NCBI RefSeq assembly: GCF_006345805.1
Contig: NW_021835970.1
Coordinates: forward strand, 35,905 to 99,904
Direction of reading: 5' to 3'
DNA: 64,000 bases
From: Octopus sinensis
Taxonomy: Eukaryota
The notes below the pieces were generated by a model. That model did no database searches, had not been told where the DNA came from, and saw nothing but the letters and a program-made list of their open reading frames with translations. Shown here piece by piece: positions 18,331-64,000 of this stretch. Position 1 is the stretch's first letter, and each line of letters opens with the position of its first letter. A program made the position numbers and the translations under genes.

Positions 18331-18339
18331 AAACAAAAT

Positions 18340-21257: not shown

Positions 21258-21625
21258 TTTTTTTTTTTTAAACAGAATTGTTTATTAACGAAAACAACAA
21301 AAAACTATTATGAACTGGCTCGCAGGATTGAAAGACAATTCCCGCGTAAAACAGCCAGCGAGATCCTCTGAATGAGGAATATAAATTCCCTCGGATCTCT
21401 GGAGCGGTGGGTGCACAAGCGGCCAAGTTTCTTGAGATGGGCAAGCGTCTTGGCCCCAAAAACACAGGAGGTTTCGACAGCAATTGCCCAAAAGCAAAAT
21501 CGATCGAGTAAATCAACATATTTCGATAGTTTTGCAAATTCGGCCTTCTCGGCCGACGAGCCGGGACGACAAGCCGTAGCATTTAAGGCACCCTTGGCGA
21601 AGGAGTCGGAACAGGTGACGTCCCG
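21258..21625 (-). mobile_element. CRE-2, short 5'-truncated insertion
   Basis: DVTC..AVETS..QRISLAV; poly(A) seen as poly-T at ~21256-21269; 12-bp TSD TTCAAATAAATT at 21246-57 and 21626-37. Confidence 0.92.
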
Positions 21626-21711
21626 TTCAAATAAATTATAGCGTGCAAGTATATATAACGCGCAATAATTTAATCGACGTGGTGACATTTCAAAAAATTT
21701 AGAAAAGCCAA

Positions 21712-22620
21712 ATGAAGAACGAAGAAGCAAGAAACAAAGACCCGTGTCAACTCACTCACTCTACCAGCGCATGTGCTACCTGCTCCCGAAAGAACTCTCG
21801 GAAACTGGGCCTATTCTGCTCCTCTTGTGGGGTCTACCATCATATTGGCTGCGCAAAGTTAAGGAAGAAGGCTGTCAAGGGCTTTCGTAGTTGGCTTTGC
21901 TCACCTTGTTTACGCATGTTCACCTTTTCTGAACACCGAGCAAAACGCTCTGATCCATTTTCAATCATAGACGGAGATTCAATTATTCTGCTGCTCTCTT
22001 CTATTCGAAAATCCAGAAGGATCCCTTTAAAGATCCCCAAGTCAGCCAGAGTTCCTGCTGCCTCGTGCCTCAACAGTCTTGTTGAAAGGACACTCCAGTC
22101 ACGTGACACAGAATCATGGATTCGCCTTTTCTGTTTTGCACCTCTTGGACTTGGAACTTCTGTACACTTTTCAGAAAACCGCAAGTCTTTGGATTCTGAA
22201 AATAAATCGCATCTAAAATCCCTCCTTGAACGCCCTATTGAGGAACTAATTGATCAGTCTGAGCGGCACGACGAATTTAATCGGCCACGCTTGGGAGATG
22301 AGAAGGAATGGGTCAGAGGAGAAGTTTCTCGTAAATTTATGGAGGGGGACCTGCGGGGAGCACTCCGATTTGGCTGAGGTACATAAAGTTCAGAAATATT
22401 CCAACCTGTTGGACAACTTCATCTTCTCCCCAATATCCGTAGAAACCTCCGGGGTCATGAGCCAAAAATCGTTCGAACTCGTCGGGAAAATCGGGAATCT
22501 GATTTGAGAAGACGGAGAGAGCCTCGGGAGAAGCAATGGTTGTTCCAAAGAATATCCATTGCGATCCTGAGGGTTAACGTCTTCTCGATCATCAGTAGCT
22601 TTAGATTGTGATAATCATTT
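21712..22620 (+). mobile_element. CRE-like element: PHD-containing 5' part fused to the CRE-3 3' end (RT deleted)
   Basis: CATC..CSSC..HIGC..WLCSPC, IPLKIPKSARV; at ~22372 it jumps to the VETSGVM..QRISIAI segment shared with 29150-29400. Confidence 0.85.
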
Positions 22621-23900: not shown

Positions 23901-26835
23901 TTTCACACGTTTATCACGCACACAAAAAATATTGAACAGATTGTGCCGTTTGAATGTCTCTTTCATCAAAACAGCCACTCGATCACCCACTTGAAAGTGT
24001 TCTGGCCTGATTTGCTGGTTCGGATTAGAAAATATTAAATCATGTGAAAGTTAAGCTGCTTTGACTGTTTCTCATGAGTTTTCGTGTACGATCCGGAATC
24101 GGAAATGGATCGGACAACGGAAATGTGATGCGTCCACCAAAAAGAGCACCAACATTCGAATATCTCCGGTCGACGGAATGTTAAATCTAAGCAAGCAAAA
24201 AAACTGGCTAAGGGTTGTCGCCAAATATGAGTGTGCTCGCTCTACGGATGGGATTTATAAACAAAATATTAAACAAAACATACATAAGAAATTATTTCAA
24301 GTACAATGGGCCTTGTTTATCACTTGGTAGTTTTGTAACTCCTCCTTTGTCATCTCTCTCGATCGACCGTGGAGGTCGACAACAAAATTGGTATAGAAAG
24401 TGTGATCATTGATGTAATGCTCGAACCTCTCATAATAACTATTAAATACTGCAGTGATCTAATAAATATAAACGTTCAGATCAAATTACTTGAAAAAATT
24501 CTTTAAATTCAGGATGGTCAATGAAATGGCGATAATCAGAATCATATGGATTTATGATTGTTTTGTATTAAGTTTTCTAAAAATTTGTTCTTGGGCAAAT
24601 TTAAATCAGTTGTTAAGAAAAGAAAATTTTATTAAAAATATACAAGTGTCCCAAGACTAATTTGACCCACTGTAAATAATTAAAGGAGGACGCGACACTA
24701 TAAACATCCTCTGGCTCACTCATTCGTCCACACTACTATTCAAAATGGGTAATGTGGGCTACAAATAAGGGGACAAAGCAAACGTTTGCTAAAGAATAGT
24801 TATCTTCCAAGTCAGAATCGTCTTCTTCTGGTTCCGAATTCACAAACCTCTCGGGATCCACAGCCAACCAGTTCAACTAAACATTACAACAGCACATACT
24901 CGACTACGAGTGGACACACACTTCCAGCGCCCAGGCCAGAACACTTTCAAGTGGGTGATCGAACCCACTTAAATCAGTTGATTCAAAATATTCACCACCA
25001 TAAACAGGAAGCATTGATTGCATCGCTCTTTATTTATTAAATATTAAATAACATCCGACATAACCCGATCTTATTAACAAATTTAAATACTTTAAAAAAT
25101 ATACCTTTATTTTAGTATGTATCAATGTGCTTATTTAGGGCACTTTTACGTGTTTTTTTATTATTGTGAGCCTACATTTGTCAAACTGATTTTATCGGTT
25201 CGGCTTTTACCCAGCGTACTGGGCTTTTTGTCTGTGGGCTCTTCGCAGCCCTAAGACTGCTGTGCTGCTTTGGCAGACGGACATCACCGTCACGCAAGTG
25301 CGCCAGTGTTCTTGCAATTAATGCAAGTTTTTGCAGCTGGGACACTCGGTTTCGGCTTGGAACTCGGGCAGTTTTGGTGCCTGTGTTCTTTACCGCAGAG
25401 GAGGACAACGGAGTTTTCTGAGCATTCTGTAGGACGTATGTCCAAAATGATTGCAAACGGAAACATCTCGTTGCTGAGGGCTTGTGCAATCGCAGCGGAT
25501 ATGGCTGAAGCCCGCAGTATTCCAAAGCGGACGAAGCAGCATCCTATGGCGAACTGAATTTTAGAATGAAGGTGCCGGACTTCTGTAAGGTTATCCGGGC
25601 TTTGGAAGCAGTTGAGACTTGGATAGGAGGTTTAAACTCTTGATCTTTCCAAGTGCGAGTTTACGATAGTCAGAGAATATGTGAGGTTTGAGCTGTTAAC
25701 CTCAGTAGTCGTCTGATAAAATGGGTCTCACTGTGTTTTTGAGCCACAGTAGGGTTCGGATGTTTGGTGGGTTATTCAGCTTGATGGGTTCGCAAAAAAG
25801 CTGTGGCTTTCCGCTGTTCGTCTTTGAACTTTGGAGCAAGCTTTGATTGATAAAAAAATTTTGTTTATTCTTGACCATTTTTTCTTCTTTCTTGACTATG
25901 CAATGGATTTTCACAGCAATTTGAATTTTCCGAATTTTTCGAGGAATGCCAAAAAGTATCATTCCGAAAATTTTGGTTTATTCCCTCGTCATTTTAAAAA
26001 TAAAATTAAATATTTTTAAAATAATATTTTATTAGCACCATTAAATAATAGGAACTATTTCTTAAATTGATGAATTTTGCGAGATTACAGACTAAATTAC
26101 TAGTGTACTAATTAAAGAAAAAACAGAGAACGATCAGATCCCGGTTCAAAGAATAGCTGCGCGTTGCCGCGCATGAAAACGTTTCCGGACTAAAGTGGAA
26201 GTGAATTATGAATTTGAATTTTATGACTGTGTCAAGAAAAAACCCACCCTTTGCATTCGAGATCTGGAATATTAAGTTGTATTTAAGCGTTATTTAGCAA
26301 ATTAACTCCAAGATGACATTGAAAAAACTGCATCACAATTAACAGAGCTTGGTTCACTTCTTTGGTTGTACAGATCTTTTGTCATACTATATTGGTCAAA
26401 CTATTTATTAAACAGAACGAAAATGATTATCACAATCTAAAGCTACTGATGATCGAGAAGACGTTAACCCTCAGGATCGCAATGGATATTCTTGGAAACA
26501 ACCATTGCTTCTCCCGAGGCTTTCTCCGTCTTCGAGATCAGATTTCCGATTTTCCCGACGAGTTCGAACGATTTTTGGCTCATGACCCCTGAGGTCTCTA
26601 CGGATATTGAGGAGAAGATGAAGTTGTCCAACAGGTTGGAATATTTCTGAACTTTATATACCTCAGCCTTCTCAGCGGCCGACCCTGGACTGAAACGGAG
26701 TCAACTATATTGGTCTTTGAGAAGGTGTCTGTGCACTTGGAGTCCCACGCGAGGCATTTCCCATTACTCCACGGAAAAATGGTGACTCCATCTGGGCGTT
26801 AACCGTCTCCACGGTCAAGCCCAACGGGTTCCAGT
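23460..26835. repeat. 3.4-kb arm duplicated in inverted orientation at 28960-30775 + 34967-36552
   Basis: Continuous reverse-complement match once the Helitron (30776-34966) is removed. Confidence 0.88.
25190..25928 (-). mobile_element. LINE-B ORF1 fragment (gag-like), fused to the histone-type promoter
   Basis: Inverted copy of 29879-30640; KPSATRCF.. Confidence 0.8.
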
Positions 26836-27230
26836 TCTGTCGGGAATCCAGCTGCTTGTAACGCAGCCGAAATAGTCTCGTTGATAGCGGAGTGTCTGGG
26901 AGCACGGCCAGCACTCCTTCTGCATGACAGGGGATGTAGTCCTTTGGTATCGACTTTACTACCACATCGGCATTGGCCCCCCGAACAGACTTTAAGTCCC
27001 AAGCGTATTGCTACGCCAATCCTCACACAGTCATTATCGAGAAAGGTTCCAGATTGGGAGCAAGGGAGGGCATTAAGCCACGCCCCACTTTCAGGTCTGG
27101 CAGCGGCACCGAAACAAGCGAGGCGATGCTGATCCAATGTGGGTCTGATTGCTTCAATTTTAGCTTTCTGAAGATATCATCTCATTCCCATTGGCGTGAA
27201 ATGTTAGATGGAATGGCCAATCCAAAAAAA
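26400..27230 (-). mobile_element. CRE-3 3' portion (CCHC + RLE)
   Basis: QHRLAC..GAWLNALP..CRCG..HPLSC..RH.AIN..EPVGLDRGDG. Confidence 0.9.
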
Positions 27231-27329: not shown

Positions 27330-28010
27330 TAATTTTACGCAAAATGAATGGCCCACTTTTTACTCGAGTTCAGATTTTATGCGGAGGCTAATAACTTCCA
27401 AATTGAGCATGATGAGCTGAAACCTTTTGGGTCGGGTTGCCATCAAATACGACAGGTTTTGTTACATTCATCGGAGATCTTCTTACTGGCCAAGTAATGA
27501 AGAACTGGAGAAGTATCTATCCCTCTGGGATTTAAAGTGAAATGCTTCATGAAGGATGGAATAAAATTTATCAATAGCAAAGCTGACTATCCTCTTGAGA
27601 GGTGAGGCAAACTCATTAATCCGACTGATAACAAACATTAACTTCAGAAAAATTGACTGCGAATGGTTTTGTTGTTACAAATGTTGTTATAAATGCCAAT
27701 CCTACGGGCATATAGCACGTTATTGCTATGCAGAAATAAGATACTTTACTTGTGGCGGTTCTCATCATAGAAAATAATGCCCAAATCCAAGAGGAAGCAC
27801 AAAACTCTGTATCAATTGTAAATCATCAGAACATTGGGCTACATACGGAGGCTGCCCCTTAGCGAAAAACAACAAAACTACAGAAGCCAATCCGCCTTCT
27901 GATTCCAGATTGTACACGGTCTCTAAGAAAGTCCAAAGTGTGACCTCAGCTTGGAAAAAACAGCAAATTGTAATTAACCGAGAAAGAGAAAGTGACAGGA
28001 ATTAAAGACG
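27330..28010 (+). mobile_element. Degenerate ORF1 (three zinc knuckles) of a further LINE family (D)
   Basis: CYKCQSYGHIARYC, CGGSHH..C, CINCKSSEHWATYGGC. Confidence 0.75.
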
Positions 28011-28089
28011 GTGATAGGACGAGACTGATGTCAAGGCAACTGAACTCTTCTGAGCTTGCGTCCAATTCATCTGTCGTGAGCCAGAGTTA

Positions 28090-28745
28090 ATATTGGCTAT
28101 GTTGCTGAATTGCTCCATTCTAGCAGGAGCTCTTGCAGCATATTCATGTCCACTCCAAGTTTGGTCAGGGCTCCTACATACCAGCGGAAGACTTCCAGTT
28201 GGGAATCTCTGTTGAGTTGGTCCTGATCCGAGTGGGCTCCTCTTTGTGACAAAGCTTTGTCACGGTTGGTTTTTCTCCTCTTATGAGGGACAGCCGAGCG
28301 GACCACTTCTATGTTAGAGCACTCATTAGTGTTTGACTCCGCGTTTGTGAGTGTGCTGTGGGCCGGCGACGTCCGAATAGAGACATCGACTTTGGACGGA
28401 CTTGAGGGAGACCCTTTTGTCCAGACTGATTCTGTGGGATTGGCTTTTACCCAGCGGACTGGGCTTTTGGCTTGTGGGTTCTTCGCAACCATTGAGGCTG
28501 CTGTTGCTGCTTTGGCAGACGGACATCCACCGTAGCACGCCAAGTGCCGAGAGTTCTTGCAGTTAATGCAAGTTTTTGCAGCTGGGACACTTGGTTTCGG
28601 CTTGGAACTCGGGCAGTTTTGGTGCCTGTGTTCTTTATCGCAGAGGAGACAACGGAGTTTTTCCAAGCATCTGTAGGAAGAATGTCCAAACTGATTGCAA
28701 CGAAAGCATCTCGTTGCTGAGGGCTTTTGCCATCCGCAGCGGATA
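28090..28745 (-). mobile_element. LINE-B family ORF1 3' half
   Basis: Three CCHC knuckles; the C-terminus NRDSQLEVF..GALTKLGV..MLQELLL is homologous to the 5' end of the 44-47 kb element. Confidence 0.88.
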
Positions 28746-28962
28746 TCGCTTATTTGAAATCTTCTCATTTATCTTTATTCATTGAATTTTACCTTATTTT
28801 TTTGATAGAAAGTTCTATTCTTTATATTCTTATGGCAAACTTTTATTTATTTGTTCCCGGATTTGGCGATCTTGTATTTTAGCGCCCTAAAATCTAAAAT
28901 GATCAATTTCTACCAAATTTTAATCATTAGTGTTATATTTTTTTTCTAGATTTTTTTTTAAA

Positions 28963-29878: not shown

Positions 29879-30640
29879 AATTCAAAATTGCTGTGAAAAT
29901 CCAGTTGCATAGTCAAGGAAAAGAAAGAAAAAATGGTCAAGAATAAACAAAATTTTTTATCAATCAAAGCTTGCTCCAAAGTTCAAAGACGAACAGCGGA
30001 AAGCCACAGCTTTTTTGCGAACCCATCAAAGCTGAATATCCCACCAAACATCCGAACCCTACTGTGGCTCAAAAACACAGTGAGACCCAATTTTATCAGA
30101 CGACTACTGAGGTTAACAGCTCAAACCTCACATATTCTCTGACTATCGTAAACTCGGCACTTGGAAAGATCAAGAGGTTTAACCTCCTATCCAAGTCTCC
30201 AACTGCTTCCAAAGCCCGGATAACCTTACAGAAGTCCGGCACCTTCATTCTAAAATTCAGTTCGCCATAGGATGCTGCTGCGTCCGCTTTGGAATAACTG
30301 CGGGCTTCAGCCATATCCGCTGCGAATTGCACAAGCCCTCAGCAACGAGATGTTTCCGTTGCAATCAGTTTGGACATACGTCCTACAGATGCTCAGAAAA
30401 ACTCCGTTGTCTCCTCTGCGGTAAAGAACACAGGCACCAAAACTGCCCGAGTTCCAAGCCGAAACCGAGTGTCCCAGCTGCAAAAACTTGCATTAATTGC
30501 AAGAACACTGGGCACTTGGCGTGCTACGGTGGATGTCCGTCTGCCAAAGCAGCAACAGCAGTCTTAAGGGCTGCGAAGAGCCCACAGACAAAAAGCCCAG
30601 TACGCTGGGTAAAAGCCGAACCGATAAAATCAGTTTGACA
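29879..30640 (+). mobile_element. LINE-B ORF1 fragment directly downstream of the histone-type promoter
   Basis: Begins at ..AAAAATTCGGAA|; SGTFILKFSS, GFSHIRCELHKPSATRCFRCNQFGH. Confidence 0.82.
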
Positions 30641-30984
30641 AATGTAGGCTCACAATAATAAAAAAACACGTAAAAGTGCCCTAAATAAGCACATTGATAC
30701 ATACTAAAATAAAGGTATATTTTTTAAAGTATTTAAATTTGTTAATAAGATCGGGTTATGTCGGATGTTATTTAATCTTAATAATAAAATGGTATGCTGT
30801 GTGTCTGTCTGTCTGTGCACACCCACATTCAAATTGTTACAAACCAGATCAAATTGTCAAAACCTTCCCTTTTGTAGTTATTCGATAATGAGGCACAATA
30901 AAAGGTTGATATCCTCTAAGAACCTTCCTGTCAAAAATTTTAATAAGAAAGAATATCCTCGATGATGAGGTCCCCCAAAACCTT

Positions 30985-33325
30985 CAAGTCAATTTTCTGC
31001 GTTTTTGTTAAAATGAACAACAAGAAAGTCCTCGACTCACATGATGTGGTCCCCCAAAACCTTCAAGCCAAAAAATTAAAAAAAATTATTTTCTGCGTTT
31101 TTGTTAAAATGAACAACAAGAAAGTCCTCGACTCACATGATGTGGTCCCCCAAAACCTTCAAGCCAAAAATTAAAAAAATTATTTTCTGCGTTTTTGTTA
31201 AAATGAACAACAAGAAAGTCCTCGACTCACATGATGTGGTCCCCCAAAACCTTCAAGCCAAAAAATTAAAAAAATTTTTTATTTTCTGCGTTTTGTTAAA
31301 ATGAACAACAAGAAAGTCCTCGACTCACATGATGTGGTCCCCCCAAAACTTCAAGCAAAAAATTAAAAAAAATTATTTTCTGCGTTTTTGTTAAAATGAA
31401 CAACAAGAAAGTCCTCGACTCACATGATGTGGTCCCTCAAAACTTTCAAGCCAAAAAATTAAAAAAATTATTTTCTGCGTTTTTGTTAAAATGAACAAGA
31501 AAGTCCTCGACTCACATGATGTGGTCCCCCAAAACCTTCAAGCCAAAAAATTAAAAAAATTATTTTCTGCGTTTTTGTTAAAATGAACAAGAAAGTCCTC
31601 GACTCACATGATGTGGTCCCCCAAAACCTTCAAGCAAAAAATTAAAAAAATTATTTCGCGTTTTGTTAAAATGAACAAGAAAGTCCTCGACTCACATGAT
31701 GTGGTCCCCCAAAACCTTCAAGCCAAAAAATTAAAAAAATTTTTTCTGCGTTTTTGTTAAAATGAACAACAAGAAAGTCCTCGACTCACATGATGTGGTC
31801 CCCCAAAACCTTCAAGGCCAAAAAATTAAAAAAATTATTTTCTGCGTTTTTGTTAAAATGAACAACAAGAAAGTCCTCGACTCACATGATGTGGTCCCCC
31901 AAACTTTCAAGCCAAAAAATTAAAAAAAATTATTTTCTGCGTTTTTGTTAAAATAAACAACAAGAAAGTCCTCGACTCACATGATGTGGTCCCCCAAAAC
32001 CTTCAAGCCAAAAAATTAAAAAAATATTTTCTGCGTTTTTGTTAAAATGAACAACAAGAAAGTCCTCGACTCACATGATGTGGTCCCTCAAAACCTTCAA
32101 GCCAAAAAATTAAAAAAATTATTTTCTGCGTTTTTGTTAAAGTGAACAACAAGAAAGTCCTCGACTCACATGATGTGGTCCCCCAACCTTCAAGCCAAAA
32201 AATTAAAAAAAATTATTTTCTGCGTTTTTGTTAAAATGAACAACAAGAAAGTCCTCGACTCACATGATGTGGTCCCCCAAAACCTTCAAGCAAAAAATTA
32301 AAAAAAATTATTTTCTGCGTTTTTGTTAAAATGAACAACAAGAAAGTCCTCGACTCACATGATGTGGTCCCTCAAAACTTTCAAGCCAAAAAATTAAAAA
32401 AATTATTTTCTGCGTTTTTGTTAAAATGAACAAGAAAGTCCTCGACTCACATGATGTGGTCCCCCAAAACCTTCAAGCCAAAAAATTAAAAAAATTATTT
32501 TCTGCGTTTTTGTTAAAATGAACAAGAAAGTCCTCGACTCACATGATGTGGTCCCCCAAAACCTTCAAGCCAAAAAATTAAACAAATTATTTTCTGCGTT
32601 TTTGTTAAAATGAACAACAAGAAAGTCCTCGACTCACATGATGTGGTCCCCCAAAACCTTCAAGCCAAAAAATTAAAAAAAATTATTTTCTACGTTTTTG
32701 TTAAAATGAACAACAAAAAGTCCTCGACTCACATGATGTGGTCCCCCAAAACCTTCAAGATAAAAAATTAAAAAAATTATTTTCTGCGTTTTTGTAAATG
32801 AACAACAAGAAAGTCCTCGACTCACATGATGTGGTCCCCCAAACTTTCAAGCCAAAAAATTAAAAAAATTATTTTCTGCGTTTTTGTTAAAATAAACAAC
32901 AAGAAAGTCCTCGACTCACATGATGTGGTCCCCCAAAACCTTCAAGCCAAAAAATTAAAAAAATTTTTTCTGCGTTTTTGTTAAAATGAACAACAAGAAA
33001 GTCCTCGACTCACATGATGTGGTCCCTCAAAACCTTCAAGCCAAAAAATTAAAAAAATTATTTTCTGCGTTTTTGTTAAGTGAACACAAGAAAGTCCTCG
33101 ACTCACATGATGTGGTCCCTCAAAACCTTCAAGCAAACCAAAAATTAAAAAAATTATTTTCTGCGTTTTTGTTAAATGAACAACAAGAAAGTCCTCGACT
33201 CACATGATGTGGTCCCCCAAAACCTTCAAGCCAAAAATTAAAAAAAAATATTTTCTGCGTTTTTGTTAAAATGAACGACAAGAAAGTCCTCGACTCACAT
33301 GATGTGGTCCTCCACAACCTTCAAG
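30985..33325 (+). repeat. Tandem array, ~25 x ~95 bp, inside the Helitron
   Basis: Unit TTTTCTGCGTTTTTGTTAAAATGAACAACAAGAAAGTCCTCGACTCACATGATGTGGTCCCCCAAAACCTTCAAGCCAAAAAATTAAAAAAATTA. Confidence 0.97.
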
Positions 33326-33989
33326 CCTCGTGAGGCCATTAATTAGCTTAGCTATCTTTTTCGATGACATAAATTCTTTTTTGTTAAATTTTCGTTAAAA
33401 AAAAAAATAAAAGCTCTAATTGTTATCGACCATGAATAGACTGTGCAATTATCAGATTTTGAAAACCACTAAAAAGGAAAAAGCAAAAATTATTAGAGAT
33501 TTACATAATTGATTCTTTTTAACTGCCGAAACTGACAAATTCGATTATGCTACTGTTTAGATTTCTTAACAGATAGAGGCAAATAAAATTAAATTAGTCA
33601 TGTAAATTTCAATTTGCCTATATTTAAATCTCCTTGATTTAACAGGCTTTAATTTTTTTCCTTATAATACTACAAAGATGAAGCTGATTATCATTTTCTT
33701 TACCGAACAGACAAGTTCGATTATGCTAAAGTTTCAATTCCTTAAACATAGAGGCAATTTAGTATAATGGCTTTGATTGGATAATACACTTTACATAAAT
33801 TTCACTAAATAAATTTACGTAGAAAATTTAATATAATTACTGATTCGCGTTTACAAAATCATAAGAATGTCCTATAAAGAGAGATCTGAGAATGTTAACA
33901 AACAAGAGAATATGAACCATATAACAAAAAAAGAGAAACGAGGGAAGATGTGCTTAAATGGTGAGGGAATTTAGACAACAGCTGAACAA

Positions 33990-37694: not shown

Positions 37695-38535
37695 TGGCCA
37701 CCACGAGGTCATTATCCTCGAAGTCCCGAGGAACCCCGAGGAGGAGGACACTTACCTTACGTTCGATCCTGACAAGGCGATGCATGCCAGGACCGAACGG
37801 ATTTGACTTCTCCAGCTCCCCTTTGAAGTTGGAGAAGTCATCCTCCTTCTCCCACCCAAGCAGGAATTGGGTGGGCTCCCTCTTCAGGACTCTATACAGC
37901 TTTGAAGGCTGGATAGAGTCTAACGTACCTAAGATCTTTATGACCGAGGCCTTCCCACTTGTAGGGAGGACCTCAAGTCGTGCCACAGCACCGAAGGTAA
38001 TTCTGCCCCCCCGCCAGTGGTCTCTTTGGGTGTGCATCCACCTGATCGGACACACACCCAGTACCTAAAACATTAGGGGGGGGTTGGACGGCCAGCCGCA
38101 CGTTTGGGTTTCCCCACCGTGTACCAACCGTCCTCAAGGGCAACCTTATTTCCTGCCGGACCCACCGGACGGCCTCAGGAGACGACACCCGTGTCATTAA
38201 TTGACTTACCTAGGCTGGGTTTGGTACCACTAGACAAACCGCAAACACGTGGCGAACCAGCATGCTGTGCGGTTGTGGCGGATACCAAACGATCAGAACA
38301 GTTGCACCTGCAGCTCCCCCGACACCAGCCATAGGGGGAGCAGAGGAAGAAGTGTCTCCAGTGAGTGCTGAACCCACCTGGGAGGGTCCAGGCTTCGACT
38401 TCTCCTTCCTGCTTCGCCTAGAAAATTAAAGACACCACTAGAATAGCCGGAAGCGCGTGGCGGTGAACCACGGCTCCGGCAATTCATCGTAGTGGCACAC
38501 TGAACCGTCTTGTCCTTCTGGGAGAGCGAGACGGG
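37695..38535 (-). mobile_element. GC-rich LINE-C 5' region / ORF1 fragment
   Basis: Frameshifted EDGWYTVGKPKR..VSVLLLGVPRDFEDNDL resembles an ORF1 RRM-like region; a diverged piece recurs at 48071-48192; no RT seen. Confidence 0.55.
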
Positions 38536-38658
38536 AACACCTCCACTTCTGCATAGTCTTCTTAGTGCAGACAGCTTGCGAGCAGATTTTGCAGACAACT
38601 GTTTCCTTGGTACTTTTGCACCAGTAGATTTTCGAGCCGTTTGTTTTGTTCTAGCCAT
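38536..38658 (-). pseudogene. H3(1-27)::H4-like(33-43) in-frame chimera
   Basis: [23 protein letters not shown]; 38536-38568 is 28/33 nt identical to the local H4. Confidence 0.85.
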
Positions 38659-38791
38659 ATTTTATTATTTCAGAAAACATTGAAAAAAAAAATTTTCGGA
38701 ATAATACTTTTTTGCATCACTCGAAAAAATTTCGGAATGATGTCTTTTTTTACTATACTGGCATTGTCATTGTTTTCTGAAATAATAAAAT
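38659..38791. promoter_or_regulatory. H3 promoter with 2 TTCGGAAT boxes 36 nt apart
   Basis: CGGAAT at 38697 and 38733, each followed by A-T-(A/G)-x-T-run. Confidence 0.7.
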
Positions 38792-39202
38792 ATGGCTAGA
38801 ACAAAACAAACGGCTCGAAAATCTACTGGTGCAAAAGTACCAAGGAAACAGTTGTCTGCAAAATCTGCTCGCAAGTCTGTTTCACAATTTGGAGGAGTAA
38901 AGAAACCTCATCGATTTCGACCTGGAGTTGTTGCAATGCGAGAAATTAGACGATATCAAAAGAGCACTGATTTGTTACTACGAAAACTTCCATTCCAGAG
39001 ACTCGTGAGAGAAACCGCTCAGTTTATCAAAACTGATTTGCGTTTTCAATCGTCAGCGATTGTCGCTCTCCAAGAAGCGGCAGAGAGTTACCTAGTTGGA
39101 ATTTTTGAAGACAGTAATTTGTGCGCAATTCACGGAAAAAGAGTAACTATAATGCCAAACGATATGCATTTATCGAGAAGAATTCGAGGTGAAAAAACAT
39201 AA
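38792..39202 (+). CDS. H3: Histone H3 (divergent)
   Basis: Intact 136 aa; AATAAA just downstream; no stem-loop. Confidence 0.98.
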
Positions 39203-43680: not shown

Positions 43681-44046
43681 TTATTTTGTATTTGTGTACT
43701 TAGTAACTGCCTTTGCACCTTCTGTAATAGCATGTTTTGCCAATTCACCCGGAAGAATCAGACGAACTGCAGTCTGTATTTCACGTGAGGTAATGGTAGC
43801 CTTCGAATTCTGATAGACTAAATTTGAAGCCTCGGTTTTTATTTTGTCATAAACATCGAATGTAAAACTGTCCATAGCCATCATAGCCTTCTTTGACATC
43901 CCAAGTTGATTATGTACTGTCTTTAAAATTTTCATAAGATATATCGAAAAAGTTTTCCTTTTCTTTTTTTTCTTTGTAGCGACGGAAAAATTTTTTGTTT
44001 TAATGGGAGCTCTTTTTTGTCCTTTTGTGCTAACTTTAGGTGCCAT
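43681..44046 (-). CDS. H2B: Histone H2B (divergent)
   Basis: [51 protein letters not shown]. Confidence 0.97.
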
Positions 44047-44069
44047 TATTAACAAAATTTGTATGTTCG

Positions 44070-46938
44070 AACGAACGAACGAAGAATTTTATTGTAAGAA
44101 AGAAGAGCGAGACAGAAACTTAGTGCGGAAAGTAATTTTGACGAGACGATTGCTTTGGGCATTCGAGCTCTTCCATGGTTCGTCCGCTTTGTCTGTCTAT
44201 GAGCAGGGACACCTGCTATTCTCCACGATCGATGAATAGGTCAGTTACTTTAGAGCGTTTCCGAAAAGTTCGGATAGAAGCCTCGATGGCTGCCGCCGTA
44301 GCTCTGGAGACTTGCTCTCCGCCCAGCTTGGGACAGGCTCCCATGGATTTAGCATATAGGCTAGTTTTAGAGCGTATCTCCGTATTTTTTCGCATTTTCG
44401 CAGAATTTTCTCATATTGTTTCGAGTAGAACCAAGCTTCCATACCATACAGTAGGCTGGGCAAGATTGTTGCATGGTATACAAATAGGAAGGTATTTGGA
44501 TTCAAGTGCATGCTTCTTAGGAGTCGGAGAGCGGCGATGGCTTTCCCTTTTCTCCGTTTGAAATGCAAATGGTATCCCGAGTTTGCGTCGATTGTGAGCC
44601 CCAGGTAACGTATGCTCTCAGGGCGAGCAATTTCCACCAAGAGCCGGGTTTGCAATCTTGCGACTTTCTTGGGTTATTTGGAGATATGCAGATTTGTCCA
44701 TGGCCAGCGAGAGTCGCTTACCAATGCACCAATTCTTTATCTCCTCAATGTAGCCGGCAAGTCGTTTCTCCGAGGCATGGTGTCCATCGAGGTGTCCAGA
44801 ACGAGAACATCGTCCGCGTAGAGGAGTAGGGATGTCCTGGGATCGGAGGGTGTGGGGAAACTGCTCATTACCAAATTGAAAAAGATTGGGCTGAGACAGG
44901 ACCCCTGCGGAACCCCCCTTCGGAGCGAAATATATCTTGAGAAGAAGCCCGACTCAGAGATAAAAGAGTAGCGATTTGTGAGGAAGCAGCGCATCCAGAG
45001 GAAGACTTCCGCTGTTGGCTCACAGAGTTCGATCCTTTCCAGGAGGTCTCTGTGCCAGACGCTGTCAAAAGCCTTTGAGATGTCCAGACATACAAGAGAT
45101 ATAGTTTCTTTAAACTGTTGCTCTCGAGATGGTGGACTGTACCGTAATGAAACAGTCACCGCAGCTACGTCCAGAGCGAAAACCCCATTGCTGCGGGAGC
45201 AGCACTTTCTTCTCTTCGGCGTGGAAGTCGAGGCGCTTGGCCATAAATTTCTCCATCAGCCTGAGATAGTTGGGATTAGGCTTATGGGACGGTAGCTGCT
45301 AGCGAGATTCACCGGTTTCGCAGGCTTTTTGATCATCCGGACCTCTGAGATTTTCCATTTTCCCGGCACATGGCCCCATTTGAGACTTGCCGTAAACAGA
45401 TCCGCGAGGAACACATGTAGGTCTTCGGTGTGCTCTTAAACAATCGCATCGGTATTTTGTCATGGCCCGGTGCGTTGCCTTTTGACGAACGGATGGCCCA
45501 GGTCACCTCTGCAATGGTGATCGGGTGATGGTCCGACGACAGTGGGGCGGCAGTGCTCTCCGACTCCCGGTTTTGCGAAGTTTCCGGATTGGCCTCATGG
45601 ATAGTGGCAGGTGTTTTGCGAATATGTTTGGCATCTCTTGTGGCGAGGCGGGCATACCAGACTGGTTGCACAACCTCGGGGGTGAGGATTTTCCTTCGAG
45701 GTTAGCCACTTTGTGGAAACAGTCCAGAATTTGGGTTTCTGTAGTCCAGGTTTTGACAAGCCTTCTGCCATTCCTGGCTGCTTCCAGCTTTTCGCGACGT
45801 GGACCTTATAACCAATTTCCGAGATCATGTTCCTAAGTCTTCCCCTGTCAGCTGGGTCCACACAGCGTTTGAGTTTATTTCTCAGCCGCTTCCTTTCGTT
45901 GAGGATGATCTTCACTTTCACGCTCAGAGTGGTCCTCCGTGCGCGGTCTGCACTTGACAATTCTCCGTACGACGTTAGATACTGAAGCATGAATTTGCTT
46001 AGCTTATCGCTTGCGGAGTCGATGTCGAGGGCTGAGTTATACCCAACAGGGCGACCGTTGTCGTGCAGGAATGCACTTATGGAGCTCCTGTAGTGTGGCC
46101 AGTTGATCTTTGAGAGATTGTAGTGAGAGGAAATGTGTTCTTGTCTAACAATGCTAGTGTGAATTTTGATCTCCATTGGTAGTGGTCACTTCCGATATCG
46201 TCAAGGACTGTAGGCTTTTCCATAAGGTTAGCGACAGAGTGAGAACAGATGCACAGGCACAGGTTGTCCCCGCCAAAGGGCGAGATGGTGGTTCGGGTTT
46301 CGGATGTCCTGACGAAAACACCAAGCTTGTCAGTGACTTCTTCAGTGTTCGACCATCTTGGTTGGTTAAACGACATCCACAACGCCGTGTGCTTCGAGTT
46401 TAAGTCTCCGATAAGAAGGCAATGAGCTGTGCTTGAGAAGAATTCGTCAATCAATCTGATGCAGGGGGGGAGATATTTGCAATATATTCCACCGACCTTT
46501 ATCCAGACAGGAATCAGTTTTCACCTCAAGAGAGAGGAATTCGCACACCGTGCTCTCGATGATGGTGTGAGGTTACGGATTTGGAGGTTTTCGGCGTAGA
46601 AGATGCTCGAGCCAGTCCCTGGCGTAGAGCATCTCCCCATTTTAGATCCACTGACCGGTAGCCCGAAGTTCGTACGAGTGGTTTTCTTTGAGCTTAGACT
46701 CGTTGACGACAATAATGTCTGGATGGCCGCTGTTACCATCTCAACGAAGTCTGGTGCCGTCTCTGATAGATCGGGCATTCACAGCGATGATTTTGACTGG
46801 GGCTATGTTGCTGCTCGTGCTCCCCCTAATAGGAGCCGTTGCAGCATCTCAGGTTCCACACCCAAGTTTGGTTAGAGCTCCCACCAAACACGATGAAAGA
46901 ATTCCATAAGGGAATCTCTGTTGTGCAGGTCTTCGTCC
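44070..46938 (-). mobile_element. LINE-B (I/Jockey/R1-like: ORF1 end + APE-RT ORF2), 5'-truncated, inserted in the H2B 5' leader
   Basis: KIIAVNARSI, DIIVVNESK, LIGDLNSKH, SDH, LDISKAFD, YADD; AATAAA + (TTCG)n tail; 13-bp TSD ATTTGTATGTTCG at 44057-69 and 46939-51. Confidence 0.95.
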
Positions 46939-46951
46939 ATTTGTATGTTCG

Positions 46952-47040
46952 GAATGGAAAAAACATTATATAATAAAAAAGTGTTATTCCAAAATTTTTT
47001 TAAAAAGTAGCATTCCGAATTTTTTGAGAGGAATAATTTG
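46952..47040 (-). promoter_or_regulatory. Displaced H2B promoter
   Basis: Minus strand TTCGGAATGCTACTTTTT..TTTTGGAATAACACTTTTTT immediately outside the TSD. Confidence 0.65.
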
Positions 47041-47670: not shown

Positions 47671-47978
47671 TTATCCACCAAATCCGTAAATTGTCCTACC
47701 TTGACGTTTCAAGGCATTAACAACGTCCATTGCGATACACGTTTTTCTTTTGGCATGCTCAGTGTAAGAATACAATCACGAACAGTTTGCTCAATAAAAA
47801 TCTTAAGGACAGAACGTGTCTCCTCGTAAATTTTTTCCAGAATTCTTCGAACACCCCCTCTTCGACATAGTCTTCTTATTGCTGGCTTAGTAATTCCTTG
47901 TATATTGTCAATTAATATCTTTCGAAATCGTTTTGCACCACTCTTTCCTCCTTTGCCACCTTTACCACGTCCAGACAT
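47671..47978 (-). CDS. H4: Histone H4 (1-nt indels, probably read errors)
   Basis: [42 protein letters not shown]. Confidence 0.93.
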
Positions 47979-56749: not shown

Positions 56750-57712
56750 ATTTGAATTAAACGAAATCATCAAAAAAAACTAGCTATTATGAACTGGCTC
56801 GCAGGATTGAAAGACAATTTCCGCGTAAAACAGCCAGCGAGATCCTCTGAGTAAGGAATATAAATTCCCTCGGATCTCTGGAGCGGTGGGTTCACAGGCG
56901 GCCAAGTTTCTTGAGATGAGCAAGCTTCTTGCCCCAAAAACACAGGAAGTTTCGACGGCAATTGCCCAAAAGCAAAATCGATCGACTAAATCCTCATATT
57001 TCGTTAGTTTTGCGAATTCTGCCTTCTCGGCCGACGAACCGGGTCGACAAGCCGTAGCATTTAAGGCACCCTTGGCGAAAGAGTCGGAACAGGTGACGTC
57101 CCAAACGACCTGTTTCCCGGATTCAAAAGCAAACAGCGTACAGCCGTCTGGACGTTTTTTCATCTTCAAGAACAATGCCCGTCGGTTCCAGAATACAAGG
57201 GAAACCATCTCTTTCCAGAGCTTTCTGAATTAGGTTGTTGATTTCGGTGTGCCGAGGAAATCGCCGGCGCTCATTCGACAAGACAAGGATGTATCCCAAA
57301 GGCGTCCTTTATCCCCCACAACGACATGGGTGAGTCTGCAGACAGGAGTCCAAAGCGATTACAGATACCCGACGAGGAATTCCTATCGAGGACAGTATCC
57401 AAAAGCGGGAAGGGAGAACATTCACCAGGAGCCTGAGTATGGCTGACAGGGCGGATCGGAAACAAGCCAGTCTGTGTTGGTCGAGAAGTGGTTCCAATTC
57501 AGTTGAAGATCGACGGAAAAGAATTTTGTCCCAGTCTCGCTGAGAAAAGACATCGGAAGGGACTTCAGAGAAATTGCGTTTCCAAAAAGCGAGGCCGAAT
57601 CAATATCAGAGTCCAACGATGATTCAGTAGTTTTTCCAGATCTTTTGGACAAGAAGATATGATCCAGCGAGTCTAAAAAACTTCTCTCTCCCGCATCGAT
57701 TATTAACAGCAA
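56750..57712 (-). mobile_element. CRE-2 family 3' ~1 kb
   Basis: QHRLAC, CRCG, RH.EIN, WDVTCSDSF, AVETS; 3' part nearly identical to 21300-21623. Confidence 0.9.
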
Positions 57713-57719: not shown

Positions 57720-60175
57720 TATTCGATCATTGTACTTCTCTGTTTCCCTCCCAGTTCGATTCCCTCCACTCTGACTACACAAATGTCGCCCCTTCTGTGG
57801 TTAACACTAAAACTTCCTCCGATTGCATTTACCTCCGTCGTAAGGTGAACAGCAAGCTGTTGGATGGCGATGTCCGTGGAGCTGTCAGACTTGTTGCCTC
57901 CTCTAACCGGCTTTTGTCCCCATCTCCTTCCGTTTGGTCTAATTTGAGATCCAAGCACCCCAGTCTTCCAGTCTCCCGCACCCAACCCGTTACTGCTGGT
58001 TACGCGCTTCACAGGTTGAGAAGGCACTGAAAAGTTTTCCCAACAGCGTAGTGGGGGTATAGATGGGCTGAAGCCCGGACACATTAAAGACTTGACATCA
58101 CCTCTTACTGCTGAGGCAGGCCGTCTCCTCTTGGAATCTATCACCAATCTCTGTAACCGTCTTATCGGTGGGAATTTACCGGATTTTGCCCGGGCGATTT
58201 TTCTTCTCGGCTAATCTCACTGCTTTGGGTAAAAAAGTAACGGGGTCAGGCCGATCGCCGTGGGTAATGTTTTCCGCAGATTGGCCGGAAAGCTCGTTTG
58301 CCACGTTGTGATCCCCGAGTTGGTCCCGAAATTTTTTTGCCAGTCCAATTGGGCGTCGGCGTCAGTGGAGGGTGTGAATCGGCTGCCCATGCCGTAAGAG
58401 AACTTATGATTCTTCATTGGAATATCTTTTAGTTAACTGGACATATCAAATGCGTTTAACACAGTGAGACGGGATCATTTGCTCGAGACCTGCCTTTCTC
58501 TCGCCCCCTCCGCTTATCCTCTGGTCCACCTTTCGTACTCACATAACCCAGCCTCCTCCTGTTTGGCGATTCCTTTATCGTCTCATCGACCGGAGTGCAA
58601 CGGGATCCCCTGGGGCCTTTCCTCTTTGCTATGTGTGTCAACTCCGTCGCTCATTCTGTCGCTCCGCTCTCCGGTAAATATCTGGTACTTGGACGACGCG
58701 ACGATTTGTGGACCTCCCCCTCTGTCTTAGACGACCTGCGGAGTCATTATCCCGGCCCTTTCATCCATCGGTCTGGAGATAACTCAAGCAAGTCCGAAGT
58801 CCTAAAATCTGAATATTCCTTCCGATTTTTTGCCGAAACTCTGGACGCCCTGAAACCTATTCTAAAAGCGCGCGGGTATCAGAAACAAAGGACCTTGTAA
58901 TCCTTGGTTCGCCAATTGGTCACGAGGCCCTCTCACAACGCTCATCGCCAGGCACAGCAATCTGTCAAAAATGATCGACGGCTTTTTTCCTCATTGATGC
59001 CCACGTCGGGTTCTTTCTTCTGCGTAACTATTCTCAACTCCGAGGCTTTTGTACACCTAAGGAATTCTCCTGTTTTCGCATGCCTAATCTGTTATCCGAT
59101 ATCGATTCTATCTTGAAGTCTGGAGCCGAGTATCTGTGCAACATCCATTTCGACGCTCTGGGGTGGCTTCAATCTTCCTGCCTGTTAATCTTGGGGGATT
59201 GGCCTTCGTTCGCCCGTTTATCTGGCTCTTCCTGCCTTCCTCTCGTCCTGGCATCATCCCTGCCCTCACTGACATCGTTCTCAGGAACCTCCCGAACGAA
59301 AAGTGTCAGTTGATCACGTTGGCCGTTCGCTGGACCTTTGGGACTCTGCGTATACCAAAAGACCTGCCGACCCATCCGTTCCAGGGTCAGTGGGACTCGA
59401 TCACTTGTGACACTCTCTCCTCTGTCCTGCTTCAGAGTTTCGACCAGCACAGGCTGGCCTGTCTTCGTGCGGGCTGCAGTCCGGGCAGTGGGGCCTGGCT
59501 TGACGCCCTTCCCCTACCGAACATCGGGACATTACTAGACGACGACTGTCTCAGAGTCGCTATTTCTCTGCGTCTCGGTTTGAAGATCTGTGAAATTCAC
59601 AAGTGCCGCTGTGGGCCATGATCGACCAGCACGGACTACACCCTCTTTTCTGCAGACGCAGTGCTGGGCGGGCACCACGCCACACAGCCTTAAATGACGT
59701 CGTCTTGAGGGGTCTCATCGCTGCCGGAATTCCATCAATTCTAGAACCGGCCGGGCTTGCTAGGGGAGACGGAAAAAGACCAGACGGTCTATCCACCTTC
59801 CCCTTTGAGTTCGGCAAGTCGCTGATTTGGGACGCGACATGTTCAGATACTTTCTCTGAACCTAATCTTCCCTTGTCAGCCGTCGCAGCCGGTTCGGTGT
59901 CCCTTAGAACAGAAAAGCTTAAGATTGCAAAATATAGAGAACTCTCGGAGCGATATCTATTCGCCCCTGTTGCTGTCGAGACTTCAGGGGTCATTGGGGA
60001 AAAGTCTTTGACTTTCCTCTATAAGCTCGGACGTCTGATCTCTCTGAAGAGAAATGACACACGCGAGACGGGCTGGCTCCTTCAGAGGATTTCCCTTGCC
60101 ATCGTACGAGGAAACTGTTTCTCCATCTACGAAGCGGGGAAGTCCTCTAACTAACTTCATCACATTTGATAAAAA
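57720..60175 (+). mobile_element. CRE-like family 5, 5'-truncated, many indels
   Basis: RPIAVGN, QRDPLGP, WYLDD, QHRLAC, KRPDG..WDAT..AVETSG..QRIS. Confidence 0.92.
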
Positions 60176-60884
60176 ATTATATACACCAAAAAAAAATTAT
60201 GTCTAGTATTGACACTAATCAATACTTTACAATCTGATTTATGCTCTAAATGAATGCATCTTTTTTGCAGTGAAAATATATTGGAGAGGAGTGTCATCTT
60301 TGAATCGAATCTTAATGTTGGAACCAGATTTGATGGCATGCGCATATTATAGTGTACCACTAAAATATATAACCATCAATTTAACTCCCTCCAATTTAAT
60401 CGATCGGATTAAAGTGTTTTAAAAGAAGAGTCAAGCTTAACAAAAAAAACGAAAAACGTGAAAGAATAAACGGTTAAATACGAATTCAATGTGTTTTGAA
60501 TTGTTGCAAATTTTTGATATTTAGGAGTCTTGTTTTTTCTTTGCTTTTGTAAAGTGGCTAGAGCGAAGCTATTTAAAGGTAAAGGTTTCAGCAAAGTCAG
60601 CGATCTTAACAAATTTAAAAGCATGCGCCATTTTGTATGAATCACGTTGTTGTTAGAAGTTTGTTGGGGTTAGAATATTCTACTAACTATTCTTGTATGT
60701 TCGACTAACGCTACAATTGATTTGATCCAAGTCGCAAATGTAATTTGTAAATCTCCAACCGCCCCGAGGGCCCGGACTTCGGAACACCATAATGAATCTT
60801 TACGAACTTCTATTTAAGAATGCAGAGGATATAAACGACTTTATTTATGATTGGGAGCGGAATCTTCTTTTAAGTCTTTGCAAG

Positions 60885-62676
60885 GGAAATCGGCACTTAA
60901 TAAAAGTGATGGGGGCATCAGACCCATCGCTGTGGGAAACACATTCAGGAGGCTCTCTGCAAAAATTATCCTCAGTGTTGTCCTCCCTGATTTGAGCTCT
61001 CAGCTGCTGCCACATCAGTTCGGTGTCGGTGTTCGCGGTGCTTGTGAGGCTTCTGGCCATGGGGTGAGGGAGTTGGTCATCAATGGCAATCCAAAAATTC
61101 CATATCTTGTTAAGCTGGACGTGCGCAACGCTTTTAACAGTGTTCGCAGAGACCACATCCTGGAAGTTGTGCACACCCGCTGCCCGGCACTCTACCCAAT
61201 TGTCCATCTATCTTATGCGCGTTCCTCGAATCTCCTTTTTGGGAAAAATCTGCTGTCCTCAGCGTCTGGGGTTCAGCAAGGGGACCCATTGGGGCCTCTC
61301 CTATTTGCCCTTGCAGTGGACCATATTGCTCAAAGGCTTTCGTGCCCGCTATATTTCTGGTATCTCGACGATGTCACCTTAGGTGGCTCGCTCGAAAATA
61401 TTCATAACGACGTTGCTGATATTATTTCGGGTTTTAGCCAAATTGGCTTATCCCTTAATGGCTCCAAGTCGGAATTTACCCTGCTCTCCCTCGATCATTC
61501 TTTATTTCATCCTGCCTTTACGTCCCTGTCCGAGAAAGTTGTCGGTCTCTCTGCGACAGACCCGGATGATCTGGTCATCCTTGGTTCACCAATCTCTGGT
61601 CGAGGTATTTCCGCTGCCATTGAGTGTAAAAAACGCCAGCTGGCTCAAACACTGGAGCGTATCTCCCAACTGGGCGCACATGTCGGGCTATTCCTTATAA
61701 AGAATTCTATTCATCCTCCGCCTAACCTACTTATTCCGCTCGTCTCCATGCTTTCGGGAACCAGACCTCTTGTCCGACCTGGACTCCGTAATCTGGAAGT
61801 CAGTTGGGAAGCTTCTTAATGTTGACTTTGGCGGGGACCAACTTACCCGCGCAATGTTACCCCTCCGTTTTGGAGGCATCGGTATCCGCTCGTGCAAAGA
61901 CATTTCTATCCCATGCTACCTATCTTCGCTCTCGGAATCAAGAAATTTTGTCAGTTCTGTTCTTTTTCGCTCCTGAACGTTTTGAACTGACTGAATTTTC
62001 TTCTGCCCTCGCTGCCTGGACCGCCTCAGGTCTTTCCTTCCCTGTGGAGGATCACTTGCAGAGGAGTTGGGACTCCATCCGCTGCAAAGAAGTGGTAAAG
62101 TCCCTTAAAGGAAGCGCCGATCAAGTTAAACTCGCCTCGTTGAATGCAGCCTGTCACCCGCATTCTGGAGACTGGTTGAAAGCCATCCCTCTGTCCACCG
62201 CTGGCCTCTTCTTGGATGATGAATCGACTCGAATCGGGACCTGTCTTCGTCTGGGAATTTCCCTTTGCCACCCTCACCGGTGCAAGTGCGGCCACATGAT
62301 TGACCCCAATGGGCTCCACCCCCTTTCGTGCCGCTTAAGCACCGGGCGTCTCCCGAGACACGCTGGCCTGAACCACGTCGTTAAACAGGCCCTCAATGCC
62401 GCAGGCTTCCCTTCTGTACTGGAGCCTGTCGGCCTCGACCGTAGCGACGGCAAGCGTCCAGACGGAATGACGGTCTTTCCATTCTCGGAGGGGAAATATC
62501 TCGTTTGGGATGTTACCTGCGAGACACCTTTGCCCCCGGGACCGTTGCTCAGTCTGCGTCCTCTCCCGGCTTCGCTTCCCGTCGGGCTGAGGAGACGAAG
62601 CGGAAGAAATACGCCTCTCTCGCACCAAATTACCACTTTGTCCCGATTGCTGTGGAGACAAGTGGAGTGATAGGGA
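60885..62676 (+). mobile_element. CRE-like family 6, truncated at both ends
   Basis: GGIRPIAVGN, QQGDPLGP, YLDD, CKCG..HPLSC, KRPDG..WDVT, AVETSGVIG. Confidence 0.92.
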
Positions 62677-63048: not shown

Positions 63049-64000
63049 CACCCTTCGACATTAAAATTCGAACACTTAATTTAAGCAAATTTTTAATCAT
63101 TTTCAATAAAATAATTTATCTGAGCTTCTTTATTTGTATTATTCTAACTATTTTAATATTTAAATATATATTGAAACATGTAATTTTAAAGAATAAAACA
63201 AAAAACGAGAATTTCATGACAAAGAAAACCGAACAAAATTTAATTAGTAGCTTGAATGCCTTCCTTTTCTGTTGTAAACTTCCAAATTTTTCATTGAGCT
63301 AACAAGTTTTCTGATGAATTCCATTGGGATATTTTCCCAAATTTCCGATATTTTTTGCTTCAGATCAATTTTTGTACTTGTTCTGCTTTCTGACGTATCA
63401 CTTGAAAGAACGTTTTTAATGTGAAGCCAAATATGGTCGATTGGGTTCATGTCAGGTGACTGAGGTGGCCAGTCGAGCAAATTAATATTTTGAGAGGACA
63501 TATATTCTTTAGTTGCCTTAGATGTGTGGCAAGGCGCATTATCTTGTTGGAATATATAGTCGCTCAATCCCATTTTATTCGCTGAATCTTCAAGATTATT
63601 TGCCAGAATATTAATATATTCCCCAGAGTTCATTTTTCCATCAATAAAAACTAATTTCCCTATTCCGAAATACGAAAAACAGCCCCAAACAAGAACTTTC
63701 CCTCCACCAAACTTAAAAGTAGGTATTATCTTCGAATATCTCAACTTATTTCCTTTTTTTCTGTATTGATACATTCGTCTTGAATGGGAAAAAAGTTCAA
63801 AACTACATTCGTCGGAGAAAATAACTTTCCTTTATCCGCTGTCGGAAATTGCAAGAAATTTTTTAGATATTCCATATCGGGAGCAATATTTTTTGAACTT
63901 ATAAATAATCGTTTCTTTACAACTCGTCCATACAAACCTTTTGATTTTAGAATTCTTGTTATTGTGTGTGCTGAGACTTTTTTGTGTAATTTTTTCCATT
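63049..64000 (-). mobile_element. Second Tc1-like transposon (runs off the window); transposase ORF 63244-63774 plus frameshifted 5' part
   Basis: FSDE, GGGKVLVWGC, FQQDNAPCH, WPPQSPDMNPIDHIW; TIR-like TA|CACCCTTCGACATTAAAATTCGAACAC at 63049. Confidence 0.92.

Follow-up and report, generated by a model that had tools for sequence, protein, structure and literature searches.

APE-type LINE retrotransposons at the starts of variant histone genes in Octopus sinensis

The stretch of DNA studied here, referred to as the window, comprises the terminal 64 kb (positions 35905-99904) of contig VCDQ01011424.1 of Octopus sinensis (GCA_006345805.1), to which exact matches of its H2A and H3 proteins assign it, and is an AT-rich region with H2A, H2B, H3 and H4 genes and gene fragments. 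It contains copies of LINE-B, a long interspersed nuclear element (LINE) with an apurinic-like endonuclease (APE) and a reverse transcriptase (RT). LINE-B is probably a young APE-type LINE that integrates by target-primed reverse transcription (TPRT), preferentially at the start or in the 5' leader of multicopy variant H2A, H2B and H3 genes, and always in their sense. This reading is carried by three LINE-B 3' junctions with target site duplications (TSDs) of 12-19 bp and differing 5' truncation points, together with the related families B'/D, C and X, which use the same sites as LINE-B, H4 leaders included. For the comparison, 17 further loci around histone genes were reached via histone proteins and fetched from other contigs, which together with the window gave a merged and de-duplicated sample of 284,749 bp. 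Positions without a prefix refer to the window, whose features are collected in Table 1, and those with an L number to the other loci.

Insertions of LINE-B upstream of histone genes

The copy named E1 stands in the sense of an H2B gene, with the junction of its tail and the target 23 nt upstream of the H2B ATG (44044-44046). A perfect 13-bp direct repeat (plus strand ATTTGTATGTTCG) stands on either side of it, and the proximal copy of this repeat ends 10 nt from the ATG. This agrees with an earlier sequence-only reading of the window, which had described an APE-RT LINE with a perfect 13-bp TSD in H2B sense and 10 nt from the ATG, where the 10 nt refer to the end of the proximal TSD. A tblastn comparison showed the order of APE and RT in the open reading frame 2 (ORF2) of E1 to be collinear with the intact ORF2 of family C, which has 945 aa. 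E1 is not full length, as its relatives extend further upstream through an ORF1 with a CCHC zinc knuckle, and its ORF2 is broken by several frame switches in this assembly. Since most differences between LINE-B copies are indels of one base (in 1116 bp, 11 gap positions against 7 mismatches), part of these frame breaks may be long-read assembly error. We infer that E1 is a dead, 5'-truncated integration product.

Three LINE-B 3' junctions beyond the copies of the window came from other histone loci of the genome. E5 (L002:17036-18145), located on the same contig upstream of the window, occupies the same H2B position as E1 to within 1 nt and has its 5' end at element position 1757. Both of its TSD copies read GGAACATAC... 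and both of those of E1 CGAACATAC... (GGAAC versus CGAAC), and because both copies differ from E1, E5 represents a separate insertion into a paralogous H2B gene. The possibility that E5 is a deletion derivative of E1 was rejected, as the same base differs from E1 in both TSD copies. E6 (L016:5858-7504) lies 8 nt upstream of an H2A ATG with its 5' end at position 1220 and a 12-bp TSD (AGAGTATAATGT), it has a tandem duplicate at L016:80-1724, and it inserted within 1 nt of a family C copy in the H2A leader. E7 (L008:1-416) ends in (TTCG)4 17-19 nt upstream of an H3 ATG, within 3-5 nt of the position of E2, a 3' fragment in the window. The 3' end of E2 is found in sense upstream of a psiH3 stub ATG (16968-16970), as had been claimed, at a distance of 16-19 nt instead of 21 nt; a search for a TSD at E2 found none, and the own promoter of the psiH3 stub is absent there. 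The rearranged LINE-B fragments at 9864-10346 preserve neither end of the element; their inverted join at 10113 resembles the product of twin priming with a later loss of the 3' end.

All five copies (E1, E2, E5, E6 and E7) are in the sense of the histone gene. LINE-B shows the hallmarks of TPRT, namely TSDs (13 bp in E1, 15-19 bp in E5 and 12 bp in E6), variable 5' ends (element positions 1, 1757, 1220 and 2646) and a 3' end that stays the same and carries a (TTCG)n tail. The LINE-B copies are 97.5-99% identical, and the element has therefore been active recently.

To relate these insertions to histone genes, the 100 nt upstream of every histone ATG were listed and the 3' ends counted, with near-start defined as at most 35 nt upstream of a sense histone ATG, a zone that corresponds to a chance expectation of 0.46% of the oriented positions in 285 kb. 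Each of the five LINE-B 3' ends falls in this zone, at 8-23 nt from the ATG (binomial P = 2e-12), and none is found in the AT-rich spacer, which accounts for over 99% of the DNA sampled. The same zone holds 9 of the 14 3' ends of families B, C and D and about 15 of 21 of family X, and such a LINE 3' end occupies 21 of 73 histone starts (29%) when a distance of 75 nt is allowed. The proposal that histone starts are a preferred landing site is thus borne out by E5, E6 and E7, by the count of five in five, and by the related families.

Related families, promoter box and captured histone sequences

B'/D is a sister family about 81% identical to LINE-B, with the type copy L014:1-3896 and a (TTCA)n tail, and is found at H3 -26 and at box 2, the second of the promoter boxes described below. 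The 5' junction pairs 15835/15837 = 4808/4810 and 25927/25928 = 29878/29879 lie at or just after box 2, and each pair goes back to a single event that segmental duplication has copied. These two junctions had been counted among four distinct LINE-B junction events; their position inside H3-type promoters was confirmed, and the sequences are 91-98% identical to B'/D, so that two of the four events stand for LINE-B and the other two belong to its sister family. Family C, with a (TTCCA)n tail, occurs at H3 -30, H2A -7 and box 2 of an H3 promoter. A full-length copy (L006:6022-9968) occupies the exact boundary between ...AACTAGCC and TGAAACTG... in an H3 promoter, 24 nt past the TATA start and with a duplication of 0-2 bp. 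Family X is a more distant APE LINE with an ORF1 of 327 aa and an ORF2 of 896 aa, whose 3' end ...CTTAACTAATAA(A/T)(G)TTTTTCC(C)n is found 10-28 nt upstream of H2A, H2B, H3 and H4 ATGs; one window copy is 57 nt away from the H3 ATG at 3236, on its upstream side and within a TTCGGAATG box. The CCHC zinc-knuckle ORF1 is present in B'/D (28097-28768 and L014:1-1131), C and X, and APE and RT are both present in the full ORF2s of C and X.

Families B, C and D have a common 3' end, ...TTACAATAAA(A/C), to which a short tail of tandem repeats is attached, and about 70-110 nt upstream they have a stem-loop with little covariation. The suggestion that the tail adapts to its target did not hold, as (TTCG)n tails occur at H2B, H2A and H3 alike. 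The sole (TTCA) tail of LINE-B, that of E2, differs by CpG-to-CpA changes, which also affect a body position of E2, and a (TTCA)n tail is likewise found in the non-histone relative G. A sequence termed Y (...GATTGTTTCGC) was considered as a transposon end and rejected, being ordinary cluster DNA.

The ORF2s of C and X are 32% identical over 873 residues, compared with 24-30% for all other sequences; the best matches among 1.8 billion representatives, octopus fragments aside, reach 25-30% identity. A word-index protein search with the B'/D RT, the C ORF2 and the C endonuclease returned nothing above 36% identity except one annotated family C fragment, and it found no close LINE-B-like protein among the annotated proteins of the genome. 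An exhaustive HMMER search revealed two annotated octopus relatives, P0140 and P0148, whose loci L018 and L019 contain families F (L018:7257-15330, tail (TACC)n) and G (L019:8915-12627, tail (TTCA)3), F being on a contig of 1.29 Mb and G at 202-223 kb on one of 428 kb. The RT tree unites these families in a single octopus clade, (X,(G,(F,(C,(B,B'))))), with backbone supports of at least 96/94, within which B, B' and C form a clade of their own (99/97). The G tail abuts a ATTACAATAAAT motif that resembles the 3' end of another member of the clade. A PDB search matched only R2 and L1 RT chains, without an R1Bm or TRAS1 endonuclease among the matches, and human L1 ORF2p and R2 scored alike and weakly (E 1e-15 to 1e-19). 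Members of the R1 clade have a Cys/His motif downstream of the RT in ORF2; the C-terminal 100 residues of the C ORF2 contain no CCHC pattern and a single Cys.

The nick sites differ between histone genes, with TTC^CGAAC in H2B, AGC^AGAG in H2A, GTT^CTGTC in H3, GCC^TGAAAC in H3 (family C) and GTTC^ATTTAG in H4 (family X), and a consensus sought across the insertion events was not found. The nick lies 7-30 nt from the ATG and 20-37 nt from a TATA-like box. The distance from the end of the closest TTCGGAAT-type box upstream to the nick is 33-37 nt in 12 events, which cover H2A, H2B, H3 and H4 promoters and families B, C and X; variants of the box are TTTGGAAT in H2B and TTGGCAAT in H4. Where the true 5' flank could be used (n = 4), the values are 34 nt for E1, 35 nt for E5, 36 nt for E6 and 37 nt for the full-length C copy. 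As the spacing from the box is constant despite differing nicks, cutting appears to be guided by a landmark, and the promoter sequences suggest a box-guided, ruler-like targeting near the expected transcription start. Promoter-internal insertions, the two B'/D 5' junctions among them, fall at box 2, which lies 34 nt after box 1, and such a ruler would also account for these secondary sites.

Copies of family X open with an H3 leader from TGAAACTG, followed by H3 codons 1-28 in frame with ORF1. At L006:566/567 such a 5' end with the H3 leader adjoins non-promoter DNA, and it therefore belongs to the element. In other copies this ORF1 is preceded in frame by H2B codons 1-25, and the ORF1 of family E, which follows a leader of H2B type, starts with MAPKKNSKEN.... 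In the window, the psiH3 stubs (9132-, 9542+, 16970-, 17416+, 36895+ and 38658-) are 5' ends of histone-ORF1 units of this kind and are thus explained as LINE 5' ends. Such fusions would fit elements whose transcription begins at histone starts. The final ~25 nt of X (TAATAATGTTTTTTCCCCCC, L006:5117-5141) include 14 nt identical to the native core promoter of H2B (TATAATGTTTTTTCC...) in the stretch between TATA and leader, at 46952-46975 and upstream of L016:10409; X might supply a replacement core promoter to the downstream gene, or might have gained the 14-nt stretch by read-through.

On a wider reading, which in our judgement is about evenly balanced between right and wrong, an octopus guild of LINEs (B, B'/D, C, X and E) has specialised on a single protein-coding multigene family, reads the TTCGGAAT box, nicks about 35 nt downstream of it, close to where transcription should start, and uses the captured histone promoter, and some lineages have adopted the histone leader, start and N-terminal codons for their own ORF1. 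Within the principal reading itself, an element protein, or a host factor bound by it, probably reads the box, with the endonuclease cutting about 35 nt, or about three and a half helical turns, downstream. The protein of the element itself could touch the box, as in R2, whose protein binds upstream of its cleavage site, or the contact could go through a host factor, as in TRE5-A. By landing in sense, a full-length copy would come to lie immediately downstream of a histone promoter and be transcribed from it, and the multicopy target would make the loss of single histone units tolerable, as for R1 and R2 in ribosomal DNA (rDNA).

Alternative explanations and known target-specific elements

Several points weigh against histone-directed, box-guided insertion. 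Every LINE-B copy examined came from histone-centred loci of one assembly, about 285 kb of a 2.7-Gb genome, so that LINE-B may not be exclusive to histone genes across the genome. Roughly half of the spacings between box and nick come from paralogous empty sites and not from the pre-insertion allele, and the expected transcription start coincides with the 33-37-nt mark, so that only the few box-2 events separate the two readings. The histone genes of the cluster are divergent, lack the stem-loop and are in many cases frameshifted. Finally, F and G, which serve as a negative control, are not adjacent to histone genes and branch between X and B/C, with no histone gene or leader at the 3' end of either (their loci were reached without histones); targeting is therefore not clade-wide, or it arose twice.

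LINE-B could instead prefer the start sites, or the nucleosome-free or melted promoters, of any active gene, with the link to histones resulting from sampling. This would account for the unconserved nick sites and for nicks about 20-37 nt past TATA-like boxes, and the sampled loci are indeed histone-centred only. However, the spacing to the box is tighter than that to TATA or ATG, and the box-2 insertions are 75-95 nt away from the ATG on its upstream side, at a place where a start would not be expected but another box lies 34 nt upstream. A LINE striking all promoters would moreover be strongly deleterious, and the annotated proteins of the genome yield no close LINE-B-like match, so we regard a general preference for promoters as unlikely. 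A second mechanism of site choice would be homology, as has been proposed for R1 and SART1, in which read-through RNA with a histone leader anneals to a nicked leader elsewhere and the RNA thus selects the site. The elements stand in sense right upstream of leaders, so that read-through RNA would include the leader, and the 5' ends of X type carry histone leader and coding sequence. Yet LINE-B copies with 97.5-99% identity occur at the unrelated leaders of H2B, H2A and H3, the tail and never leader sequence abuts the target in every copy, and an AATAAA precedes the tail by 9 nt, which makes guidance by the RNA quite improbable.

It would also be conceivable that there is no targeting, and that segmental duplication, gene conversion or 3' transduction amplified a small number of chance insertions, or that these survived in a repeat graveyard. 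The region is heavily duplicated and contains many other repeats, and several junctions are one event copied, such as E2 and 9267-9375, the tandem copies of L016 and the 13-kb repeat of L006. Duplication is nevertheless not the explanation, because the three LINE-B events carry their own TSDs, which differ in length and sequence and belong to copies with different truncation points, E1 and E5 differing at the same base in both TSD copies; nor is 3' transduction, because these TSDs flank the LINE alone. Insertion without targeting is also at odds with the neutral AT-rich spacer, in which LINE-B 3' ends are missing, and with the single surveyed 3' end of a LINE with a restriction-like endonuclease (RLE), at about 8958, which has a long poly(A) tail and lies away from a histone leader. 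Chance insertion is accordingly the least credible of these accounts and hardly to be expected, and insertion of LINE-B at histone starts remains the preferred reading.

The octopus elements resemble R1 and R2 of arthropod rDNA in that a multicopy gene is hit in sense, repeatedly and independently, at one fixed position, in the sizeable share of occupied units (here 29% of histone starts), in the frequency of dead 5'-truncated copies and in their probable reliance on the promoter of the host unit. They differ in that the target is a protein-coding family transcribed by RNA polymerase II (Pol II), entered at the promoter or leader rather than inside the transcribed product, and in that one octopus family uses at least three unrelated nick sequences; R2 in addition has an RLE. 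SLACS, CZAR and CRE of trypanosomatids and NeSL-1 of nematodes insert in sense a few nt past the start of a multicopy Pol II gene, the spliced-leader gene, and inherit the host promoter. The likeness to these elements lies in the sense insertion near the start of a multicopy Pol II-transcribed gene, whereas they have RLEs, recognise one exact sequence and target a small-RNA gene. With the APE elements of the Tx1 and R1 clades, the octopus LINEs share the APE-type endonuclease and a specificity for repeated sequences. TRE5-A of Dictyostelium is an APE-type LINE that integrates about 50 bp upstream of tRNA genes via TFIIIC/TFIIIB (PMC3159450; PMC5391098), with TFIIIB serving as host factor (PMC3159450). 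Like TRE5-A, the octopus elements are specific for a position and not for a sequence, at a fixed distance from a promoter landmark of a multicopy family. The targets of TRE5-A are Pol III genes in contrast to the Pol II histone genes here, and the rules of orientation and distance differ.

Histone genes are missing from the target lists read in publications on target-specific APE-type elements, and no published histone-targeting LINE, nor another protein-coding family used in this way, was found in the literature. If the reading is true, histones would be the first family of protein-coding genes seen to act as a dedicated landing site or 'safe haven' of a LINE, and an APE-type LINE would find a site in Pol II promoters by a landmark instead of the nick sequence, which is relevant to engineered site-directed retrotransposon insertion. 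Confirmation across the genome would extend the 'safe haven' strategy to Pol II genes, offer a second system beside rDNA and R1/R2 for the co-evolution of a multigene family and its parasite, and explain many 'pseudo-histone stubs' of octopus assemblies as LINE 5' ends.

The histone cluster and other features of the window

The histones of the window are divergent, and its H2A variants bear the annotation 'histone H2A-beta, sperm-like'. An AATAAA follows the genes (43684-44046, 47712-47978, 38792-39202 and 780-1139 with their 3' flanks), and an Rfam scan of the window gave no match of any kind and thus no canonical histone 3' stem-loop; the histone genes of the cluster are apparently polyadenylated. 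In the window H4, reading continues in another frame past the called stop, pointing to either a frameshift or an indel in the assembly. The window is rich in segmental duplications and in fragments of several kinds of LINE (Table 1).

Table 1. Positions of LINE copies, insertion-site features and related sequences (UTR, untranslated region; CDS, coding sequence).
Feature	Position	Strand	Remarks
LINE-B copy E1	44070-46938	-	2869 bp; 5'-truncated APE+RT LINE without ORF1
E1 3' tail	44070-44083	-	sense (TTCG)3TT; abuts target directly
AATAAA 3' of E1 stem-loop	~44088-44093	-	
E1 3'-UTR stem-loop	44139-44185	-	kept in families LINE-B, C and D; covariation weak
E1 ORF2, RT region	44305-45435	-	PF00078 match in 44737-45159
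E1 ORF2, apurinic-like endonuclease region	46079-46809	-	PF14529 match in 46077-46454
E1 TSD, proximal copy	44057-44069	.	sense CGAACATACAAAT
E1 TSD, distal copy	46939-46951	.	
H2B CDS	43684-44046	-	intact, 121 aa; cut off from own promoter by E1
H2B promoter remnant	46952-47019	-	upstream of E1
H2B promoter TATA	46967-46975	-	
H2B proximal TTTGGAAT box	46986-46993	-	34 nt from nick
H2B distal TTCGGAAT box	47012-47019	-	
LINE-B 3' fragment E2	16989-17206	-	97.7% identical; tail TTCATTCATT
E2 duplicate	9267-9375	-	same 5' truncation junction; 3' part deleted
LINE-B internal fragments, rearranged	9864-10346	.	sense 2331-2580 direct, joined at 10113 to 239-472 inverted
B'/D RT fragment	15037-15835	-	98% to L014; 5' junction in H3-type promoter, 16 nt past box-2 site
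Duplicate of the 15037-15835 fragment	4581-4808		
B'/D 5' part with CCHC ORF1	25177-25927	-	5' junction at box 2, H3-type promoter
Inverted duplicate of the 25177-25927 part	29879-30642	+	
B'/D derivative	27967-28768	-	ORF1 joined to 3' UTR, ORF2 deleted; same derivative at L012:18337-19856
Family X copies	3297-4217; 1-723; 37706-38658	-	also L006:596-5141; many loci
Histone N-terminus::ORF1 fusions	38293-38658	-	also L007:939-2189; L006:19311-20084; L001:17268-18686
LINEs with PHD-like finger and RLE-like region	5935-8922; 59136-60154; 60851-62670	+	also L013:16363-18900
LINEs with PHD-like finger and RLE-like region	26799-27137; 56780-57208	-	
LINE with PHD-like finger and RLE-like region	21308-22377		

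Units with H3 stubs are arranged as head-to-head inverted repeats with arms that are 97-98% identical (16049-16991 / 17395-18338), the left arm of which stops exactly at the LINE-B 3' junction, and further head-to-head repeats of this kind are found at 8970-9220 / 9454-9704 and at 38571-38880. A satellite of 94-95 bp forms two arrays, at 20006-20993 and 30992-33327 (10.5 and 24.8 copies, 94% matches), which are opposite in orientation and share about 78% identity. Other LINE families of the window encode a PHD-like finger at the N-terminus, then an RT, and at the C-terminus a region resembling an RLE, with the motifs judged by eye. A Tc1/mariner-like transposase fragment is present at 63244-63774 (-) as an ORF of 176 aa with motifs of the DDE region.

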